A stretch of 64,000 nt of DNA from Entomortierella parvispora E1425. Its lineage: Eukaryota > Fungi > Mortierellomycota. Where the stretch lies: contig BQFW01000009.1 of the NCBI GenBank assembly GCA_020891255.1, positions 248,001 to 312,000 on the forward strand, written 5' to 3'. Under the pieces are notes generated by a model that saw only the letters and a list, made by a program, of their open reading frames with translations, had not been told where the DNA came from and made no database searches. The position numbers and the translations under genes are program-made. Positions 1,461-56,048 of this stretch are shown here, piece by piece. Positions within the stretch are counted from its first letter, which is position 1; each line of letters starts with the position of its first letter.

Positions 1461-2267
1461 CTACGAAGAAGTTCCAATCCAGATTAGCTTTGTATCGAAT
1501 GAGCTCCTGACTTCATTCTAGCTCCTACCTTGGCTGGCTGTCCAGCTAGTCAGAGACTGTTCTGATCCGTTTCCCCCAACGGGATTGAAGGTAGACACTA
1601 TTAAAGTATCCAGAAAGTAACATATTAAAACGTAAACTCGAGCACCTCTCAACGCAAGGCCTGACTCTATCTTCTCCTCATACGTTCACCCTCGATTTGA
1701 TCAATCAACTGCTGAAGGACAGAAGAATCTTCTAAAGGAGTATAAATGGATTTACGTGAGCCGATGCAATAGCATTCCACTCTGGACATTCAAGTCAATG
1801 CTACATTCATACCTTCTGTCGCCATGGGGTTTCTGCGTGAGTTGCTTTGTACTCTGTTTGGAAAGGTGGGAGAATATCAAAAGGCGTGAAAGAGAAAGCG
1901 GCATTTTTTTTTGTTTTACTTGGGCGACATGACACCACGTCGCAAGGCGTCTGACCTGCAGCGCTTCTCCCCCTTTTTCTATATGTGATTCCACCTTCCA
2001 AACTTCTCCTGGCTGCCAGGACAAACGCAGACACTCGCTCCACTGCAGGAACGTAAAGAGCGGTGATTTTAAAACGCGAGAAATGCGTATCGAAGGGTGG
2101 CCTTCAACAGCCGTGCGCAATGTGCCGAACACGCGGAAATATGGTGATACGTTCTCTTGGCGACTCTGGAGACTCTGCCAGCAAAGGAGTATTCCGCAGG
2201 TCAAAGCAACCCTTGGCAAAAACAAAAAATGCGCTTGCCATCTTCCCCACTAAAAATAAACAATAAT

Positions 2268-2341
2268 CGCTCCCGGGTGGGCTTGAACCACCAACCTCCT
2301 GATTAACAGTCAGACGCGCTAACCAATTGCGCCACGGAAGC
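2268..2341 (-). tRNA. tRNA-Asn (GTT), intronless
   Basis: The reverse complement folds into a cloverleaf: GCTTCCG/CGGGAGC acceptor stem, GCGC D stem, TCTGA-CTGTTAA-TCAGG anticodon arm, GGTGG-TTCAAGC-CCACC T arm. Confidence 0.97.
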
Positions 2342-2465
2342 AACCTCATCCTTGTTGTGATTGGTTGTCCATAGATTCCGGCGGTCAGTCCTATAGCTGA
2401 GGCCCTTCAACTCACGTGACCAGACTCGCAGTCGCGTCCCCTTAGTCCCCTGGCAGTGCGCCCGC

Positions 2466-2674
2466 ATGGGGAAGATCCATTTTTTGTAACATTCTACTCT
2501 TCTTTATTACACGGTGACGAGCCGTGGCATTTGTTGCGCGGGGATCCGGGGTCTTTGTTCGTCTGGACCACGCGGCTTTGCTCAGGTTGTAGATAGTTTG
2601 GTATCGCACTTCACTTCTTTGGCTCGACATAGCAAATAAAATGTTGCAAAAAAAAAAAAAAAAAAAAAAAAAAA
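2466..2674 (+). mobile_element. Non-LTR retrotransposon family 1, copy 1 (5'-truncated: end of ORF, 3' UTR, A27)
   Basis: Nearly identical to 3533-3738, ends in poly(A), 18-bp TSD. Confidence 0.9.
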
Positions 2675-2692
2675 CCCTGGCAGTGCGCCCGC

Positions 2693-3738
2693 GGGGACAC
2701 GTCTCGACGCACACAGCACATCAAAAAACTCCATGGGATGCTTCCGACACTCACAGTCATGCAGGCGCGACACCCAGATATGTACGCAGACGCACTCTGT
2801 TGCCTGTGTCGTGCAGCCCCAGAGGACAACGACCATGTGTGGACTTGTCCAAACTCATACAATCAACAACAACTGATTTGGGCGGATGCGGTGGCTTCAA
2901 TACCAAAGTGGGGCAGGGCCGCTATCAGGAAAGCCAATGAGGACGCTGACACCAGACATCGCAAGCAACAAGCCCGCACACCCAACGTTGCAGCCCCGAA
3001 ACGACTCCAATGGTACCAACCATCGGACACGCTCTTGTGGGCATCACTTTACTCTGCTTTTCATGACCTGTCAGCCTTCCGACCCCCTGAGCAGGGACAG
3101 CTCAAAGCTCCGTTGGCATCGGCTTGTTCTGTCGTCACTGCTTACCAAGGACTGCTCCATTCGGCTCTGATCGAGGCCTGGAGGCCAATTATTAAAGGCC
3201 CTCGCTCTGTCGTGGTCGCCGTTGCTCATCAGTTTATTCGTCGTCTGGACAGGGATGCCTTAGCTCGGCTCTGGAAGACGCGCTGCGAAGTGACTATTGC
3301 ATGGGAGAAGACACAAGGTATCCGCCCCAAGATGAAGAAGCAAGCCCAGACTGGGCAACCGTGGAACAATGCCTCTGGTACGATCTTACCACCGGACACT
3401 TGCCAATGCGGAAAGCCTAACACCGACCACCATCAAGGCCTCTGCCCTGGTGCCCAAGACAATCCCACGCTGGCCGACCAGCGCTTACTGGCTTGTGTGC
3501 GTGGCCAGGTTCACTTATCGACATTAGAAAAGATGGGGAAGATCCATTTTTTGTAACATTTTACTCTTCTTTATTACACGGTGACGAGCCGTGGCATTTG
3601 TTGCGCGGGGATCCGGGGTCTTTGTTCGTCTGGACCACGCGGCTTTGCTCAGGTTGTAGATAGTTTGGTATCGCACTTCACTTCTTTGGCTCGACATAGC
3701 AAATAAAATGTTGCAAAAAAAAAAAAAAAAAAAAAAAA
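2693..3738 (+). mobile_element. Non-LTR retrotransposon family 1, copy 2 (about 1.05 kb; C-terminal zinc-binding region of ORF2, 3' UTR, A24)
   Basis: ORF 2738-3556 carries C-x2-C…H-x3-C (CCLCRAAPEDNDHVWTC), typical of the post-RT domain of LINEs. Poly(A) tail and 16-bp TSD. Confidence 0.9.
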
Positions 3739-3750
3739 CCCTGGCAGTGC

Positions 3751-4048
3751 GCCCTGGTGCCCAAGACAATCCCACGCTGGCCGACCAGCGCTTACTGGCT
3801 TGTGTGCGTGGCCAGGTTCACTTATCGACATTAGAAAAGATGGGGAAGATCCATTTTTTGTAACATTTTACTCTTCTTTATTACACGGTGACGAGCCGTG
3901 GCATTTGTTGCGCGGGGATCCGGGGTCTTTTGTTCGTCTGGACCACGCGGCTTTGCTCAGGTTGTAGATAGTTTGGTCTAGCACTTCACTTCTTTGGCTC
4001 GACATAGCAAATAAAATGTTGCAAAAAAAAAAAAAAAAAAAAAAAAAA
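3751..4048 (+). mobile_element. Non-LTR retrotransposon family 1, copy 3 (about 300 bp, A26)
   Basis: Repeats about 3443-3738 of copy 2 with a few variants. 11-bp TSD cctggcagtgc. Confidence 0.9.
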
Positions 4049-4061
4049 CCTGGCAGTGCTC

Positions 4062-4135
4062 TTTTTTTGCAACATTTTATTTGCTATGTCGAGCCAAAGA
4101 AGTGAAGTGCTAGACCAAACTATCTACAACCTGAG
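4062..4135 (-). mobile_element. Inverted 74-bp 3' end of family 1 (T7 plus reverse-complemented 3' UTR)
   Basis: Exact reverse complement of 3956-4029. Confidence 0.85.
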
Positions 4136-5641
4136 TGCTCCATTTTTGGCGACAGTGGTGGCAGAACGGAACGGCACGTCAAGTGGGTCAAAGGACATGC
4201 TGGGAACATAAGCAACAACATGGTAGATATTGTAGCAAAGGCGGGACATACCAAGGACGCTTCGGACATGGACCCCGCGGTGCACACAGACATGAAGTGC
4301 CATGCAATTTTCAAGGGACGACTGGTAGAAGACGACCTGCGACAAGTACTGAAGAAACAATCAGTGGCAAGGACACACCTCAGATGGGCAAACCAGCGCA
4401 GAACAAAGGCAATGGTTCCAGAATGGGAATTTGTTGAGTGGCAAACAACAATTGCTATCGTTCACAACGGCTCCACACCGAGAAGCTTGTTCACAAGCAA
4501 CTGGGACTGCACGAAACGGGCACATAGGATAAAGAAGCTGCATGGCATGTTGCCTACGCAAAATACATGCACAACTGGCGACCGGATCTGTATGAGGACG
4601 ACTACTGCCGAGTCTGTGAATCCAATGTGGAGGACACAAACCATATATGGAGGTGCCCAGAAACGCTGACGAGTCAATGCGAAGGTTGGGAAGAGACAAT
4701 GAAATTGGTGACCAGCCTTGGCAAGAAACTGTGGGAGCGAGCGAAGGAAAGCTGGGAGAGCGAGAAGAAGAAAGCAGAGGAAGAAGGCAAGGAATTCAAG
4801 AAGAAGGAACCGACGTTTTCGGACGAGACTACGGATGGCTTTTGGACGATGCTGATGGATTTTTTCCGAGGAGCAAGAAACATCAAGGCACAAAACCTAT
4901 TGGACGACGATATGGAAAGAGAGGAGGTGGCCGATCACGGATCACTCGCATGGCGACAATGGACGGTCATCGACGCCTACCACGGATTGGCGCCACTTTT
5001 CCTGAAAGGCAAGATCAAGACACTGTTCTGCACGACCCAAGAGATCGCGAGCATCATGGCGGACGGTTTTATCAAAGGCATCGAGGACTACGACCGAACA
5101 GGGATTTGGAATCCACGTTGCAAAAAGACTGTGGACTGGGAGAAGTCTATCGGGGTTACTGGTGTGAGCAAGCGTACCAGGCCTGGAGAACCGGGTACCC
5201 GTGCTGGCGGACACGGAGGTAGCAACAGTAACTTTGGTAACTTTAACCGGGACAGGTTTGATGTGACAAGGATGAAGAGACTCCACAAGGCTGCGGACAA
5301 AGATATCTTAGATGAATACCAAGGAAAGCGCGTGTTGAACGTCATGGAAAGAACAGGGTGAGTGAAGTACTTCTTGGAGAAGGATCTCGGAAACTAGTGA
5401 CGAACGAGCATGAAAGGCCACAGAGGGGACTGGGCCTGGCCTTGCTATAGCAAGCCAGAAGCTCCCTCTCTTTGGTCGCGGTGTTACGAAACCAGGGTGC
5501 ATGGGCCGTCATAGACGGGTTGTTTTAGTCAGCTTCCCTTGGGTGGAGCAGGCGCGTGAGCGTGTGTGTACTTACAATTAGCAGACAATGAACCCCGCGC
5601 CTGTGAGGCACCACTTGACAAGAAAAGAAAAGATAAAAAAA
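4136..5641 (+). mobile_element. Non-LTR retrotransposon family 2, 5'-truncated and frameshifted (RNase H C-terminus plus zinc-binding domain)
   Basis: WVKGHAGNISNNMVDIVAKAG (RNase H end motif) at about 4187-4245. HGMLPT…RPDLYEDDYCRVCESNVEDTNHIWRC is split over ORFs 4220-4669 and 4567-5361. A-rich tract at 5620-5641; the 3' end is approximate. Confidence 0.8.
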
Positions 5642-5694
5642 CTGGAGGAGAAAGGCCCTTGTCAATATCCAGCTAGGAGCGACTCACCAAACGA

Positions 5695-5960
5695 CACCTC
5701 AAGCACGGTCGTGGTCGCAGTTGCTTATCAGCAGGGATGTTCTTGCACGTCTCTGGAAGACACGCTGCGCGAAGTTACTACTGCACGGGAGAAGACTCAA
5801 GCCGTCCCAAGACGAAGCCAGCACAGCGGGGTCAACCGCAGAACAACGCCTCTGGTACGATCCTACCACCAAACACCTGCCAATGCGGCAAGCCACACTC
5901 CTGTCCCGGCGCCCCAAGGCGATCCCAAGCTGCTAGACTAGCGTGTACTGGCCTGTAATG
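5695..5960 (+). mobile_element. Decayed older copy related to non-LTR family 1
   Basis: Frameshifted matches to the copy 2 ORF (RD.LARLWKTRC, NNASGTILPP.TCQCGKP). Confidence 0.8.
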
Positions 5961-18875: not shown

Positions 18876-19914
18876 TGTGGTGTAGTAGATGTGGAGTCCC
18901 GGTCCACATCCATCGGAGTAGAGATATATTTTCAGTAGCATTTATTATTTTGTTTAGTTTCAGTTTTTTTTTCTATAAAGAAGGGAGCAAAATCCATTTT
19001 GCTCCTGGTTGCCTTTTTCCTTTACGATTCCTGCCAGTACACTTTTGTTGAACCCTTCAGAACACAAACATACATCCCCCCCTTCCTGCCCGATATCCCC
19101 TTTGCAGCAGCAGCAAGCTCGACGCCTTAATTCCGATTGCTGAGACTATTAGTAGCTAGTCTAAACCTCCTCCCCCCCCTACCTTTGGATATCACAGACC
19201 TATTGCGTTCTGTTGATCGACCTTGTACACTCACAAGTTACGATCTTCCCCGTCCTCGACAAGTCCCGTCAAGAACCTCGGCCAACCACTTTTCCGTGTC
19301 CTTGCTCACTTACGAGGTACCAACAATGTCTTGTCTCTTTTGAGTGGACTTGTACGATCTTGGCATCCCATCCTGAGGCCTTAACTGGCGCTTGGGCATC
19401 CTGAGGCCTTAACTGGTGCTTGGGAACCTCCCTTATCTTCTCGTCGCCTTCCCTCGAGTCCCTCCTGAACCCTCAGTTAGGAGGCCTTGTCCCCTTTCCC
19501 TGGATAGAATATTTCTGGCCGTGCTCTTACTGATTAGATCCCTTCAATCCTCCCTTGTTGTTGTTATTAGTTAGTATAGTACCTAGTGTTCGCCTCCGTA
19601 GTTGTTTATTCTCCTGTTTGGTTACCATTAGGACGTGCTTAGCTCATTGGTATGTCCTTATTAGTCTCCTTTCAGTTTCGTTCCTGCTTATATCGTGATC
19701 CTGTTGCTCATTCTCCTCCTCCTGTCTATCCAGTTCATTCTCTCGAGATTGTATCTGATCATATAGCAGTGCTGTGCTTGATCCTTGTGGCACAGAGAGC
19801 AAAGTCCCTATCATATGTAAGCAGCGAGCTTTGTTCGTTATTATTCTTTTCGTTATCATTTTCACCTCCAGCCTTTGCTGACGTTAGACTATACTTACTT
19901 TAGACAACATCACA
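18876..19914 (+). mobile_element. LTR-like unit A1 (1039 bp, TG..CA) with mismatched flanks acgg/tcgg
   Basis: Begins tgtggtgtagtaga and ends acaacatcaca. Near-identical to four other full copies in the window. Confidence 0.9.
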
Positions 19915-41754: not shown

Positions 41755-42798
41755 TGTGATGTTGTCTAAAGTAAGTATAGTCTAACGTCAGCAAAGGCTG
41801 GAGGTGAAAATGATAACGAAAAGAATAATAACGAACAAAGCTCGCTGCTTACATATGATAGGGACTTTGCTCTCTGTGCCACAACGATCAAGCACAGCAC
41901 TGCTATATGATCAGATACAATCTCGAGAGAATGAACTGGATAGACAGGAGGAGGAGAATGAGCAACAGGATCACGATATAAGCAGGAACGAAACTGAAAG
42001 GAGACTAATAAGGACATACCAATGAGCTAAGCACGTCCTAATGGTAACCAAACAGGAGAATAAACAACTACGGAGGCGAACACTAGGTACTATACTAACT
42101 AATAACAACAACAAGGGAGGATTGAAGGGATCTAATCAGTAAGAGCAAGGCTAGAAGTATTCTATCCAGGGAAAGGGGACAAGGCCGCCTAACTGAGGGT
42201 TCAGGAGGGACTCGAGGGAAGGCGACGAGAAGATAAGGGAGGTTCCCAAGCACCAGTTAAGGTCTCAGGGTGCCCAAGCGCCAGTTAAGGCCTCAGGATG
42301 GGATGCCAAGATCGTACAAGTCCACTCAAAAGAGACAAGACATTGTTGGTACCTCGTAAGTGAGCAAGGACACGGAGAAGTGGTTGGCCGAGGTTCTTGA
42401 CGGGACTTGTCGAGGACGGGGAAGATCGTAACTTGTGAGTGTACAAGGTCGATCAACAGAACGCAATAGGTCTGTGATATCCAAAGGTAAGGGGGGGGGG
42501 GGAGGAGGTTTAGACTAGCTACTAATAGTCTCAGCAATCGGAATTAAGGCGTCGAGCTTGCTGCTGCTGCAAAGGGGATATCGGGCAGGAAGGGGGGGAT
42601 GTATGTTTGTGTTCTGAAGGGTTCAACAAAAGTGTACTGGCAGGAATCGTAAAGGAAAAAGGCAACCAGGAGCAAAATGGATTTTGCTCCCTTCTTTATA
42701 GAAAAAAAAACTGAAACTAAACAAAATAATAAATGCTACTGAAAATGTATATCTACTCCGATTGATGTGGATCGGGACTCCACATCTACTACACCACA
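41755..42798 (-). mobile_element. LTR-like unit A2 in the integrase of C
   Basis: 4-bp TSD acgt. Removing it restores KRRRDHKF. Confidence 0.92.
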
Positions 42799-43382
42799 AC
42801 GTGACCACAAATTCAAAGTCGGTGATAAGGTCTTGCTAAGCGCTACCAATATCACGATTCCCGCCGATACCACTAGACCAGCCCACAGTACCTTGGGTCA
42901 TTCACACTATTGGAACAACACTCGCCAGTCACCTTCGGCGTTGACTTACCTCCCTTTTACAAGATCCATGACGTCTTTCATGTGGACACGTTCCGACCTT
43001 ATCGGTCGTCCCCAGAATCTCTCGGGCCTCGAACAGTAGCACCACCGGACCCGACCATCATCAACGGCGAAGAGGAGTATGCAGTCGAATAAATTTTGAA
43101 TTACCGTCGATTCCGCAGGCAACATCAGTTCTTGGTCTCATGGAAAGGCTACCGCAGAGAGGCCGACGAATGGGTCCCACTAAGCAACTTAGACAATTGT
43201 GCTGACATGGTCCAAGCTTTTAAACAAAAACGTGGACTCATTTTTTAAAAGGGGAAGGTGTAACAGTATGACATTAATTCGGTGACATCACGCGGTCCTC
43301 GCCTATGTACAGTAAGTTAGTACCTAGCACTCAAATAAACATCACTTCTTGTCTCCACTCTGTTACCAGTACTCCTATTGCA

Positions 43383-44126: not shown

Positions 44127-46286
44127 TCATCTATCTACCTCCATGTGGGAGTCTTCTTCAGGTACATCCTCAACCACTTGAGTTGGTACGACTACTTCAC
44201 CACTGCTCGTTCCATAAAGATATGGAATATTTATATTAAAGGTTGTGAAGGCGCCTTCCCATTCAGAAAAAAAAGGCTCAAGGTCAAATTCTGCTTCTTG
44301 AGCGTTTGTCAGAGACCATTTTGGTTGTTCGTCGATGGTGTATCCTTTCCAGAGGACGAGCCATTTCGGTGTTTTACGATCCTTTGTCGCCGTGGCCGGA
44401 AGGGTCTGTTGCAGTGCGCAATACGTCGGCGTTGAAGACTGGCGATCACTTCTAATTTGGCACTGTTGCCTCCACATACGCAAACTCAACACAACCGACC
44501 GCAGTTTCCTCAGTGAGGGTTTACGGAATCAACGCCCGCGATTCCCTACGATCTCCTCTGCAGGCGCTTACAAACCATGCCTACAACAACCAGCGGGATT
44601 CTATATGCCACTTGCGATCCCAGGACAACAATGAGACGCAGCCTGTGGTTTCCGAGAAGTCTTCCGAACAATCGTCTTGACCAATTCTGGACCACCCTCG
44701 TGGGCCTTATGGACAATTGGAAAGCGAGCCAACCGTACACTAGACGATGCCAGTGATGGAGTTTGCTTACAATAACTCCCAAAACCCGTCCACAGGTGAG
44801 GGCGTTCTGTTGTTGCAAAATTAGCTCAAGCACAGGAGCGAATTGCATGAGCTCCCGGAGTGTCCTGGGTTGAAGCCATTCGCGTATTTCATTTCGATAA
44901 CTTGGTGTTCTCGTAAGAGGGTCTGAGTCCAAATAGGACCGCATTGAACTCATAATGGCTGTACCTTGTGCAAAAAGCGATCGTCGGGGTGGATTTGCAT
45001 CTGATGGTGTGGTGTAGTAGATGTGGAGTCCCGATCCACATCAATCGGAGTAGATATACATTTTCAGTAGCATTTATTATTTTGTTTAGTTTCAGTTTTT
45101 TTTTCTATAAAGAAGGGAGCAAAATCCATTTTGCTCCTGGTTGCCTTTTTCCTTTACGATTCCTGCCAGTACACTTTTGTTGAACCCTTCAGAACACAAA
45201 CACACATCCCCCCCTTCCTGCCCGATATCCCCTTTGCAGCAGCAGCAAGCTCGACGCCTTAATTCCGATTGCTGAGACTATTAGTAGCTAGTCTAAACCT
45301 CCTCCCCTTACCTTTGGATATCACAGACCTATTGCGTTCTGTTGATCGACCTTGTACACTCACAAGTTACGATCTTCCCCGTCCTCGACAAGTCCCGTCA
45401 AGAACCTCGGCCAACCACTTCTCCGTGTCCTTGCTCACTTACGAGGTACCAACAATGTCTTGTCTCTTTTGAGTGGACTTGTACGATCTTGGCATCCCAC
45501 CCTGAGGCCTTAACTGGCGCTTGGGCACCCTGAGACCTTAACTGGTGCTTGGGAACCTCCCTTATCTTCTCGTCGCCTTCCCTCGAGTCCCTCCTGAACC
45601 CTCAGTTAGGCGGCCTTGTCCCCTTTCCCTGGATAGAATACTTCTAGCCTTGCTCTTACTGATTAGATCCCTTCAATCCTCCCTTGTTGTTGTTATTAGT
45701 TAGTATAGTACCTAGTGTTCGCCTCCGTAGTTGTTTATTCTCCTGTTTGGTTACCATTAGGACGTGCTTAGCTCATTGGTATGTCCTTATTAGTCTCCTT
45801 TCAGTTTCGTTCCTGCTTATATCGTGATCCTGTTGCTCATTCTCCTCCTCCTGTCTATCCAGTTCATTCTCTCGAGATTGTATCTGATCATATAGCAGTG
45901 CTGTGCTTGATCCTTGTGGCACAGAGAGCAAAGTCCCTATCATATGTAAGCAGCGAGCTTTGTTCGTTATTATTCTTTTCGTTATCATTTTCATCTCCAG
46001 CCTTTGCTGACGTTAGACTATACTTACTTTAGACAACATCACAATGGTAGCCAGATCGGAGGTCCAGTTTGCTGAAGAAGCGAGCGGTTTTAAGCGGTCA
46101 ATCATTTCGTCGATATTGGGTAGAGGGTGACGATTTTTGAAGCCTTTGTGGAGCTCCTCAGCGTTGGCGGGGAACTCAACGTGTACAAGATGGCGAGGTA
46201 GATCGTGTGAGGGGTCTTGGGCGGCCAATCATGCGTTACCATTGGGGAGTCCCTTTCCTGGAGGGTGATTTTGTTGACAGCGGCGG
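44127..46286 (-). pseudogene. Heavily deleted Ty3/gypsy pol remnant H (RT and chromodomain fragments)
   Basis: KNRHPLPNIDEMIDRL and ARFFSKLDLRSGYH|QMQIHPDD, which joins across A3. KWLVLWKGY chromodomain-like motif near 44340. Confidence 0.75.
45008..46043 (+). mobile_element. LTR-like unit A3 in remnant H
   Basis: 4-bp TSD atgg. Confidence 0.92.
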
Positions 46287-46886: not shown

Positions 46887-47926
46887 TGTGGTGTAGTAGA
46901 TGTGGAGTCCCGATCCACATCAATCGGAGTAGATATACATTTTCAGTAGCATTTATTATTTTGTTTAGTTTCAGTTTTTTTTTCTATAAAGAAGGGAGCA
47001 AAATCCATTTTGCTCCTGGTTGCCTTTTTCCTTTACGATTCCTGCCAGTACACTTTTGTTGAACCCTTCAGAACACAAACATACATCCCCCCCTTCCTGC
47101 CCGATATCCCCTTTGCAGCAGCAGCAAGCTCGACGCCTTAATTCCGATTGCTGAGACTATTAGTAGCTAGTCTAAACCTCCTCCCCCCCCCTTACCTTTG
47201 GATATCACAGACCTATTGCGTTCTGTTGATCGACCTTGTACACTCACAAGTTACGATCTTCCCCGTCCTCGACAAGTCCCGTCAAGAACCTCGGCCAACC
47301 ACTTCTCCGTGTCCTTGCTCACTTACGAGGTACCAACAATGTCTTGTCTCTTTTGAGTGGACTTGTACGATCTTGGCATCCCATCCTGAGGCCTTAACTG
47401 GCGCTTGGGCACCCTGAGACCTTAACTGGTGCTTGGGAACCTCCCTTATCTTCTCGTCGCCTTCCCTCGAGTCCCTCCTGAACCCTCAGTTAGGCGGCCT
47501 TGTCCCCTTTCCCTGGATAGAATACTTCTAGCCTTGCTCTTACTGATTAGATCCCTTCAATCCTCCCTTGTTGTTGTTATTAGTTAGTATAGTACCTAGT
47601 GTTCGCCTCCGTAGTTGTTTATTCTCCTGTTTGGTTACCATTAGGACGTGCTTAGCTCATTGGTATGTCCTTATTAGTCTCCTTTCAGTTTCGTTCCTGC
47701 TTATATCGTGATCCTGTTGCTCATTCTCCTCCTCCTGTCTATCCAGTTCATTCTCTCGAGATTGTATCTGATCATATAGCAGTGCTGTGCTTGATCCTTG
47801 TGGCACAGAGAGCAAAGTCCCTATCATATGTAGGCAGCGAGCTTTGTTCGTTATTATCTTTTCGTTATCATTTTCACCTCCAGCCTTTGCTGACGTTAGA
47901 CTATACTTACTTTAGACAACATCACA
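46887..47926 (+). mobile_element. LTR-like unit A4
   Basis: 4-bp TSD gcgg. Confidence 0.92.
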
Positions 47927-48350: not shown

Positions 48351-49389
48351 TGTGATGTTGTCTAAAGTAAGTATAGTCTAACGTCAGCAAAGGCTGGAGA
48401 TGAAAATGATAACGAAAAGAATAATAACGAACAAAGCTCGCTGCTTACATATGATAGGGACTTTGCTCTCTGTGCCACAAGGATCAAGCACAGCACTGCT
48501 ATATGATCAGATACAATCTCGAGAGAATGAACTGGATAGACAGGAGGAGGAGAATGAGCAACAGGATCACGATATAAGCAGGAACGAAACTGAAAGGAGA
48601 CTAATAAGGACATACCAATGAGCTAAGCACGTCCTAATGGTAACCAAACAGGAGAATAAACAACTACGGAGGCGAACACTAGGTACTATACTAACTAATA
48701 ACAACAACAAGGGAGGATTGAAGGGATCTAATCAGTAAGAGCAAGGCTAGAAGTATTCTATCCAGGGAAAGGGGACAAGGCCGCCTAACTGAGGGTTCAG
48801 GAGGGACTCGAGGGAAGGCGACGAGAAGATAAGGGAGGTTCCCAAGCACCAGTTAAGGTCTCAGGGTGCCCAAGCGCCAGTTAAGGCCTCAGGGTGGGAT
48901 GCCAAGATCGTACAAGTCCACTCAAAAGAGACAAGACATTGTTGGTACCTCGTAAGTGAGCAAGGACACGGAGAACTGGTTGGCCGAGGTTCTTGACGGG
49001 ACTTGTCGAGGACGGGGAAGATCGTAACTTGTGAGTGTACAAGGTCGATCAACAGAACGCAATAGGTCTGTGATATCCAAAGGTAGGGGGGGGAGGAGGT
49101 TTAGACTAGCTACTAATAGTCTCAGCAATCGGAATTAAGGCGTCGAGCTTGCTGCTGCTGCAAAGGGGATATCGGGCAGGAAGGGGGGGATGTGTGTTTG
49201 TGTTCTGAAGGGTTCAACAAAAGTGTACTGGCAGGAATCGTAAAGGAAAAAGGCAACCAGGAGCAAAATGGATTTTGCTCCCTTCTTTATAGAAAAAAAA
49301 ACTGAAACTAAACAAAATAATAAATGCTACTGAAAATATATCTCTACTCCGATGGATGTGGACCGGGACTCCACATCTACTACACCACA
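48351..49389 (-). mobile_element. LTR-like unit A5 in the gag of F2
   Basis: 4-bp TSD gcgt. Removing it restores tggatggcgtcaggggg, as in F1. Confidence 0.92.
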
Positions 49390-55134: not shown

Positions 55135-55510
55135 TTTTCGTTTGCCTTTGTTTGATCATCACAGAACACATACACATCACCCACTCATCTGCCCGATATC
55201 CCCTTTGCAGAAGCAGCAAGCTCGACGCCTTAATTCCGATTGCTGAGACTGTTACTTTCTAGTCACCCCTTTCTTTATTCCTTTGGATATCACAGACCCT
55301 GTTCTGCCGATCAAGCTTGCCTTCGTTCCAGTATTGAGCTTCCACCCGACCGAGATCTTTATTGATACTTGGTTCACACAGTTTAGACAGTGAGATCCTG
55401 CAACATCTATCCTCCCCCTCGCAAGCAATCTCCTTTCCCTTGATTACTTGTGACCAGCCCTTCTCTCCTTGAGTTACGACCGATCCCCAGCCCATTGTAG
55501 CAACACCACA
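55135..55510 (+). mobile_element. Truncated, diverged unit D4
   Basis: Aligns to the 3' three quarters of D1 and ends gcaacaccaca followed by ccgt. Confidence 0.85.
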
Positions 55511-55949
55511 CCGTGCGCGCCAGAACGACGAACGACGACGCAACGAACACTCGGAGCGTAGCTCACACAGCTCAGACGATCGACAAGACCGTTCCCACCG
55601 CGGATCGAGCCGCTTCGGGCCATATCAAGCTGACAATCGCCAGCGTAGAGATAACAGGGATAGCCACAACTCTCATGAGCGCAACTACAGTAAGGACCCT
55701 CTTCATATACTACGCTCTCGTAAAAATGTATGGCAAACATACCACGATCTTGATATCAACTTCAACGCACTCACTGTTGCGTCCTACTCATCTCAGACTA
55801 GAGACGTCGCCAGTGTCAGATAAAGAATTCAGAGAGTCTGTTCACTTCACAGATTCTGTCCTGGCACATGCGGGGAGGGAAAGTAGAATGTCACAAGACA
55901 TACCACAGGAACACATGACAATAAACGATGAACAATCGCACATGTTTGA
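55511..55949 (+). mobile_element. Fragment of a second copy of E (gag/PR linker) with an internal deletion
   Basis: Reverse complement of about 32710-33140 with substitutions. Confidence 0.85.
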
Positions 55950-56048
55950 GAAAAAAAAAACTGAAACTAAACAAAATAATAAATGCTATTGAAAATATAT
56001 CTCTACTCCGATTGATATGGATCGGGACTCCACATCTACTACACCACA
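55949..56048 (-). mobile_element. Terminal 100-bp fragment of unit A (A6), the right border of the nest
   Basis: Reverse complement of the first about 100 bp of A, ending tactacaccaca followed by gcgg. Confidence 0.88.

Follow-up and report, generated by a model that had tools for sequence, protein, structure and literature searches.

Insertion beside genes that RNA polymerase III (Pol III) transcribes is a safe-haven strategy that retrotransposons follow in compact genomes. Among long interspersed nuclear elements (LINEs), such safe-site targeting has so far been described only in social amoebae, and the described fungal cases combine a long terminal repeat (LTR) element with an integrase. 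Reviews name only the dictyostelid elements TRE5, TRE3, NLTR-A, and NLTR-B as non-LTR elements that target tRNA genes, and all of their fungal entries are LTR elements (PMC5006619, PMC5911963). Here we consider a stack of LINE copies upstream of a tRNA-Asn gene in the soil fungus Entomortierella parvispora E1425 (Mortierellaceae), together with the LINE family, family A, that built most of it. The stack lies in a 64-kb stretch of contig BQFW01000009.1 (positions 248,001–312,000), and this whole stretch is called the window below. A first-pass annotation of the window had proposed TRE5-like targeting, possibly undescribed in Mucoromycota; the reviews agree with the second point, and full-text literature searches found no fungal LINE that targets tRNA genes.

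TRE5-A (DRE) of Dictyostelium discoideum is a LINE with two open reading frames (ORFs), an apurinic/apyrimidinic endonuclease (APE), and frequent 5′ truncation. It inserts upstream of tRNA genes of any isotype, without a target sequence and in one orientation, at ~48 bp (40–54 bp), and it also strikes a non-tRNA Pol III gene, the Dictyostelium 5S rDNA. Targeting by TRE5-A needs the B box of the gene, and its ORF1 protein binds TFIIIB (PMC3159450, PMC5911963). NLTR-A and NLTR-B, also non-LTR elements of amoebal hosts that insert upstream of tRNA genes, do so at 2–6 bp and ~50 bp, respectively, and carry an RNase H downstream of the reverse transcriptase (RT) (PMC5006619). In fungi, Ty1 of Saccharomyces inserts upstream of Pol III genes, some way off from the gene rather than at its start site. 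Ty1, however, is an integrase-based LTR element that spreads over a ~1-kb range with nucleosomal periodicity and in both orientations, and its tether is the binding of integrase to the Pol III subunit AC40. Sequence-specific LINEs of the L1/Tx1 and R types form head-to-tail arrays because the duplication made on insertion regenerates their target.

Family A works like TRE5-A in its orientation, its indifference to isotype, and its use of a non-tRNA Pol III gene, here a leader–small nucleolar RNA (snoRNA) unit, and it is likewise a two-ORF, APE-type LINE that is often 5′-truncated and has no target sequence. It differs in host, a fungus rather than an amoebozoan; in distance, which at ~94 bp (84–117 bp) is about twofold that of TRE5-A; in having an RNase H and a ~700-residue ORF2 insert, both of which TRE5-A lacks; and in being looser, with about one-fourth of copies off target. 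The near-constant distance and the head-to-head orientation on which the TRE5 comparison had been based both hold, with a distance about twice as long. On the features tested (the median of 94 bp and the RNase H), family A does not belong to the TRE5 family proper, an L1-clade group that integrates ~50 bp upstream and whose ORF2 has an APE, an RT, and a zinc finger but no RNase H. Like NLTR-A and NLTR-B, it has an RNase H downstream of the RT. Its arrays resemble those of the L1/Tx1- and R-type LINEs, yet those elements recognize sequence, whereas the targets of family A are unrelated and their re-use would follow from a positional tether. We consider it very probable that an active lineage of APE-type LINEs built the stack and that this lineage inserts by target-primed reverse transcription (TPRT) upstream of Pol III-transcribed genes, with position and orientation both fixed.

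The stack upstream of tRNA-Asn

The sole tRNA gene of the window is a tRNA-Asn(GTT), and LINE-related sequence is confined to the stack upstream of it, as judged by a tBLASTn search of the 64 kb with family A ORF2, which detects family B too. From the tRNA gene outward, the parts are as follows (TSD, target-site duplication; UTR, untranslated region; identities are to a young reference copy).

2267–2342, minus strand: tRNA-Asn(GTT), the targeted Pol III gene (ARAGORN; Rfam RF00005, 67.4 bits, G000:C9:250268-250341)
2413–2418, strand not applicable: CACGTG core of the TCACGTGA box, at −71; tRNA-proximal to every insertion, it remains joined to the tRNA gene
2448–2465, plus strand: tRNA-proximal TSD copy, 18 bp, whose left edge is the bottom-strand nick (repeat finder)
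2466–2674, plus strand: family A copy 1, 209 bp including A27, the youngest, 100% identity (sequence, repeat finder)
2675–2692, plus strand: TSD repeat after copy 1; its final 2 nt are the 5′ end of copy 2
~2691–3738, plus strand: family A copy 2, 1046 bp (counted from 2693) including A24, 99.8% identity
3739–3754, plus strand: TSD repeat after copy 2, 16 bp; its final 4 nt are the 5′ end of copy 3
3751–4048, plus strand: family A copy 3, 298 bp including A26, 98.5% identity
4049–4061, plus strand: remains of the original target on the distal side, CCTGGCAGTGC plus TC (TSD repeat, 4049–4059)
4062–4135, minus strand: inverted family A 3′ end, 74 nt (T7 plus 67 nt), an inverted repeat pair with copy 3
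4136–5641, plus strand: 5′-truncated 1.5-kb copy of a second LINE family, family B, with RNase H, C terminus, 3′ UTR, and A-rich tail
~5690–5960, plus strand: decayed old family A-like fragment, the outermost layer of the stack (tBLASTn, 5727–5949, 58–79%)

Copies 1–3 are direct repeats of one 3′ end, with their 5′ ends toward tRNA-Asn (sequence, repeat finder), and copy 2 contains the C terminus of ORF2 with its CCHC motif in addition to the 3′ UTR. Each of the three poly(A) tracts is followed by CCCTGG... or CCTGG..., which repeats the pre-insertion sequence at 2448–2465. The first-pass annotation had described three 5′-truncated poly(A) copies of 209, 1046, and about 298 bp with a common 3′ junction, 107 bp upstream of tRNA-Asn and with their 5′ ends facing it. 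The sequence and the repeat finder bear this out, and the distance from the first nick (2448) to the mature 5′ end of tRNA-Asn (2342) comes to 106 bp.

The repeated segments of 11–18 bp are nested TSDs, a point that the first-pass annotation had left undescribed, as it had the layers beyond copy 3. Because the TSD of copy 2 holds 4 nt of copy 3 and that of copy 1 holds 2 nt of copy 2, the copies arrived in the order 3, 2, 1. All three events opened the bottom strand at a single bond (within 1 nt); on the top strand, the cut was 11, 16, or 18 nt farther out. Identity to the young reference drops outward through the stack (100, 99.8, 98.5, and 97.0%). Tandem stacks with a shared nick are found at five loci: the window, L032 (three copies), and L040, L041, and L050 (two copies each). 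In all five, identity to the reference declines with distance from the tRNA gene, the nearest copy being the youngest, and nested TSDs that include bases of the neighboring copy's 5′ end establish the sequence of arrivals both in the window and at L032.

In the simplest model, the tRNA-proximal TSD copy keeps the preferred distance from the gene, such that the next ribonucleoprotein cuts the same bond and displaces the older copies outward. The stacks are thus repeated hits on a single nick. Assembly duplication, unequal crossing-over, and template jumping were all considered as origins of the stacks and are excluded by the differing truncation points, the TSDs between copies, and the age gradient. 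The tRNA upstream regions of the E. parvispora genome are thus layered archives of LINE activity.

The inverted fragment at 4062–4135 is 100% complementary to copy 3, including variants private to that copy, and has a 5-bp TGCTC repeat on both flanks. It may have arisen as a rare mini-insertion in the opposite orientation at this position, or else as a by-product when copy 3 inserted; twin priming was rejected as its source, as the inverted piece is on the wrong side of copy 3. Similar inverted junctions are present at two other loci, L031 (7715-7769) and L036 (upstream of 7184).

Distance, orientation, and target sequence across the genome

The E. parvispora E1425 Nanopore assembly comprises 38.66 Mb at 409x and has 192 nuclear tRNA genes (PMC8759367). 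Its 44 matches to the family A 3′ UTR, at 90–100% identity, have unrelated 3′ flanks. The census drawn with this query comprises the window plus 20 loci of 10 kb and seven of 3 kb. The 27 loci were oriented on the element, 5′ ends were mapped against the reference, and TSDs were called. Distance was taken from the tRNA-proximal edge of the TSD (the first nick) to the mature 5′ end of the head-to-head gene, with the following results.

Window, tRNA-Asn: 106 bp
L032, tRNA-Leu-AAG: 92 bp
L034, tRNA-Val: 94 bp
L037, tRNA-Ala: 94 bp
L039, tRNA-Leu-AAG: 87 bp
L041, tRNA-Gly: 96 bp
L042, tRNA-Lys: 91 bp
L047, tRNA-Ala: 93 bp
L050, tRNA-Leu-AAG: 112 bp
L027, tRNA-Arg: 117 bp
L040, tRNA-Cys: 84 bp, after subtracting a later 6.1-kb LTR retrotransposon 2–6 bp from the tRNA gene
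L038, tRNA-like leader unit: 102 bp

Over these 12 sites, the nick lies 84–117 bp upstream (median 94 bp, standard deviation (SD) 10), and TSDs are 10–21 bp long. The element is head-to-head with the gene at every one of them, its 5′ end toward the Pol III gene's 5′ end. The targets are 11 tRNA genes of nine isotypes and one unit consisting of a tRNA-like leader plus a snoRNA. A thirteenth family A event, at a tRNA-Arg(TCG) of L037, is also at −102, and at L043 (Leu-TAA) and L048 (Thr) the orientation is again head-to-head, with other LINE material intervening. With 192 tRNA genes in 38.66 Mb and even a generous 100-bp range, the chance of at least 12 such sites among 25 is ~3e-37.

No sequence is held in common at these positions. 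The 3′ junctions of ~30 further copies are mutually unrelated, and 15 clean nick sites yielded no consensus. Family A does not recognize a target sequence; it is position-specific, not sequence-specific. The first-pass annotation had left the choice between a tRNA-targeted and a site-targeted element to a genome search with the 3′ UTR, and that search, in which flanks vary and distance stays constant, retains the positional half of the claim (12 sites, −84 to −117) and discards the sequence-specific half. A fixed distance over many isotypes, a fixed orientation, and the lack of a conserved target are together what characterizes the position-specific, Pol III-targeting class of elements.

From these junctions, the order of events can be read. 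The endonuclease, acting 84–117 bp (median 94 bp) upstream of the mature 5′ end, nicks the tRNA-sense strand. Reverse transcription proceeds toward the tRNA gene, so the commonly truncated 5′ end faces the gene, and a second nick 10–21 bp farther out gives rise to the TSD.

The one tabulated target that is not a tRNA gene, at L038:2253-2490 (raw coordinates, plus strand), starts with a leader that resembles a tRNA and contains a perfect B box, GGTTCGAATCC; directly behind it come an snR79-like C/D snoRNA (40.4 bits, E 4e-5, below the Rfam gathering score) and a T9 run. We take this layout to resemble that of the Pol III-transcribed SNR52 of yeast, and the unit is a candidate for an SNR52-type snoRNA gene transcribed by Pol III. 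Its use as a target points to the Pol III machinery rather than tRNA sequence as the cue.

The CACGTG core of the TCACGTGA box, a Cbf1-type E-box, is found at −47 to −103 in 15 of the 18 nuclear tRNA genes examined; ~0.6 would be expected by chance. These genes include tRNAs with no family A insertion directly upstream, and the box looks to be an upstream element shared generally among the tRNA genes of E. parvispora. We know of no description of a TCACGTGA-type upstream box at these tRNA genes. Two further short motifs recur close to the nick. CCCTTA(A)/TAAGGG occurs at −84 to −104 in 6 of 18 tRNA upstream regions (L027, L031, L034, L037, L047, and window 2439–2444), and CGCCACCAA is present at five insertion sites (L035, L048, L049, and L050 among them), of which two lack a recognizable tRNA gene. 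Either motif may reflect the binding of a factor or a weak preference of the endonuclease.

Structure of family A

Two family A copies share 5.7 kb at 99.5% identity, and the copy at L044 has an uninterrupted ORF2 of 2323 residues, with the following parts.

Residues 47–280: APE-type endonuclease (Exo_endo_phos, PF03372)
Residues 658–936: RT (PF00078)
Between RT and RNase H: a region of ~700 residues without a family match
Residues 1809–1950: RNase H
C-terminal: tail with a CCHC motif, matching zf-RVT weakly (E 0.068)

The endonuclease is, by its PF03372 domain, of the APE type and not a restriction-like endonuclease, which settles the typing that the first-pass annotation had called for. The N-terminal endonuclease, the RT, the poly(A) tail, the variable 5′ truncation, and the TSDs of 10–21 bp are all features of APE-type LINEs. 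The best solved-structure relatives of ORF2 are human L1 ORF2p and the L1 endonuclease, in a search of the PDB, which holds no Tad, I, or Jockey references; a cluster search with the RT region (Atlas) returned generic RT clusters only. ORF1, read in part at L044, aligns from residue 294 of a 717-residue relative, and the ORF1 proteins of relatives contain RRM and zf-CCHC domains. This alignment places the full-length element at ~9.8 kb, similar to the metagenome contigs of 10.1–10.3 kb that hold relatives of 68% identity. With copies that are 99–100% identical and ORFs that are intact, the element looks active.

Family B and metagenome relatives

Family B has 22–36% amino acid identity to family A over the C-terminal part of ORF2, and relatives of family B are 46–47% identical to family A in the RT region. 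An RF00005 search of the genome scored 63 of ~1193 candidates, and the tRNA positions available for comparison were ~40% of all. At this coverage, 14 of the 36 genome matches to the family B 3′ end are head-to-head beside a known tRNA gene and none is in the opposite sense. Where the family B 3′ segment directly abuts the upstream region, its edge is 123, 135, or 149 bp from the tRNA 5′ end. At L037, a family B copy with its own 11-bp TSD is inserted in a family A copy.

Similar arrangements are found in soil metagenome sequence. Contigs of a relative with 47% RT identity retain the full-length 5′ end, which has the conserved terminus AACTCTTTCC; in contig L058 it is head-to-head with a minus-strand tRNA-Lys at 121 bp. 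In contig L059, it is 148 bp from the 5′ half of a tRNA-Ser-like sequence truncated by the contig end, again head-to-head. Several other metagenome contigs open with a preceding copy's poly(A) tract, 23–40 bp ahead of the 5′ end. Taken together, the family B and metagenome patterns indicate a habit common to diverged families and to other organisms or strains.

A chimera was also observed at L048:7497-7837 (oriented coordinates), where ~25 nt of family A ORF2 are joined to the last ~310 nt of family B and the 5′ end is 108 bp from a tRNA-Thr gene. It suggests template switching by the RT between family A and family B RNAs.

Mechanism and alternative explanations

The ribonucleoprotein is probably tethered to the Pol III initiation complex, through TFIIIB or Pol III itself, on the 5′ side of the gene. 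The insertions allow the two ends of the gene to be compared as starting points of the measurement. The distance from the nick to the B box has an SD of 24 bp, versus 10 bp for the distance from the nick to the 5′ end, in a set that includes the intron-containing Lys gene, the long-arm Leu genes, and the leader unit. Because the spread is greater for the B box, the ruler seems to begin at the 5′ side of the gene, on the TFIIIB or start-site side, and not at the B box.

Several observations weigh against targeting of Pol III genes or narrow its reach. A tether to TFIIIB or Pol III is proposed by analogy with TRE5-A, for which an interaction between ORF1 and TFIIIB was shown experimentally. The census is a selected sample, its loci having been picked with the 3′ UTR query. 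Near ~6 of 25 junctions (L026, L028, L031, L033, L036, and L045), no Pol III gene is present; of these, L045 is inside an LTR element, L031 is nested in an inverted family A fragment, and L036 abuts an inverted family B end. Three more (L035, L046, and L049) have a B-box-like motif only, with no Rfam support. We considered these three as relic tRNA genes on the basis of the motifs and a relaxed ARAGORN call, but Rfam returned nothing to E 1, and they were not counted. Specificity is therefore looser than that of TRE5-A, and the 34-bp targeting range is also broader. Among the metagenome relatives, one with 68% identity (L051:1-142) has, in the 142 bp before its 5′ end, a tRNA-like stretch with a B box that is co-directional with the element and so departs from the head-to-head rule; ARAGORN and Rfam both fail to recognize this stretch as a tRNA. 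Finally, two distant relatives in Geosiphon pyriformis (~30% identity) have no tRNA gene within 6 kb.

The main open alternative, which also counts against a Pol III tether, is that the landmark is a factor bound at the conserved TCACGTGA box, such as a Cbf1-type basic helix–loop–helix protein, or the edge of a nucleosome that this factor positions, with only an indirect link to the tRNA gene. In its favor, the box is upstream of 15 of 18 tRNA genes, and at 8 of 10 box-carrying sites the nick is 26–44 bp distal to the box; at no site is it proximal. However, L042 (Lys), L027 (Arg), and L043 (Leu), which lack the box, are struck at the usual distance, the spacing from box to nick (13–44 bp) is no tighter than that from tRNA to nick, and the insertion sites away from tRNA genes lack the box. 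We therefore regard this explanation as unlikely, although it deserves more weight than any of the other alternatives.

It is also conceivable that insertion is random and that selection spares only those copies in harmless positions, for instance upstream of tRNA genes. The genome is compact, and about one-fourth of the copies are elsewhere, as this explanation would allow. Selection, however, cannot yield a 34-bp range, a head-to-head orientation in 12 of 12 cases, or re-use of one bond within 1–2 nt, and copies that are 99–100% identical, too young for much purging, follow the same pattern. Survival bias is accordingly a highly improbable account of the data.

Slightly less credible still is the possibility that the stack is an artefact of assembly or of tandem duplication. 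Contigs assembled from reads break at repeats, and none spans 2348–2495, in two runs of the source sample or in two other samples. The three copies, though, have distinct truncation points and lengths, the TSD at each junction contains bases of the neighboring copy, and identity declines stepwise. The same architecture is seen at four other loci and in metagenome contigs, and the assembly itself was made from Nanopore reads at 409x (PMC8759367). Random distances and an assembly duplication were the two outcomes that the first-pass annotation had named as fatal to its proposal, and the genome gives neither. As for an element specific for CCTGGCAGTGC or a similar site, its probability is close to nil, because the CCTGGCAGTGC junction shared by the three window copies is explained by nested TSDs and recurs at no other locus, and the 15 nick sites have no consensus.

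Positional TPRT upstream of Pol III genes thus remains the reading that we prefer, and it bears on how such targeting arises. On balance, we lean toward the view that a Mortierellaceae LINE lineage evolved Pol III-tethered TPRT independently of the dictyostelid TREs. This lineage would have at least two active families, diverged to ~46% identity in the RT and 22–36% in the C-terminal part of ORF2, and relatives in soil metagenomes. Its ruler would be longer, at ~95 bp from the start-site side, and would reach just past the conserved TCACGTGA box, and a novel targeting domain might reside in the ~700-residue ORF2 insert or in ORF1. If so, E. parvispora would provide the first fungal, culturable model of a LINE ribonucleoprotein that reads a transcription complex. 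A fungal LINE of this kind would be a third independent solution beside the integrases of Ty1 and Ty3 and the amoebal TREs, and it would show that tethering of TPRT to a transcription complex can evolve repeatedly. Three things make the mechanism directly testable: the element looks active, the host can be cultured, and the nick recurs at the same nucleotide.

Other repeats

The later LTR retrotransposon at L040 (L040:1621-7762; G000:C8, ~2330820-2336961) is an intact, very young Ty3/gypsy element with identical 609-bp LTRs, a gag with a CCHC motif, and RT, RNase H, and integrase domains. Flanked by the TSD TTGA, it lies 2–6 bp upstream of tRNA-Cys, between this gene and the older LINE stack. 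In a second copy (L024:319-927), 88 bp separate the LTR from the 5′ end of a LINE. A Ty3-like start-site targeter is thus present in the genome as well. Given its position at −2 to −6, two classes of retrotransposon partition one Pol III landmark.

Apart from the stack, the window contains many copies of an unclassified transposable element family, a ~510-bp repeat that is 88–99% identical to L036:5984-6468 and occurs in both orientations, at the following positions.

18876–19385: ~510-bp unclassified repeat
42284–42799: ~510-bp unclassified repeat
45008–45514: ~510-bp unclassified repeat
46887–47398: ~510-bp unclassified repeat
48880–49389: ~510-bp unclassified repeat
55162–56048: ~510-bp unclassified repeat

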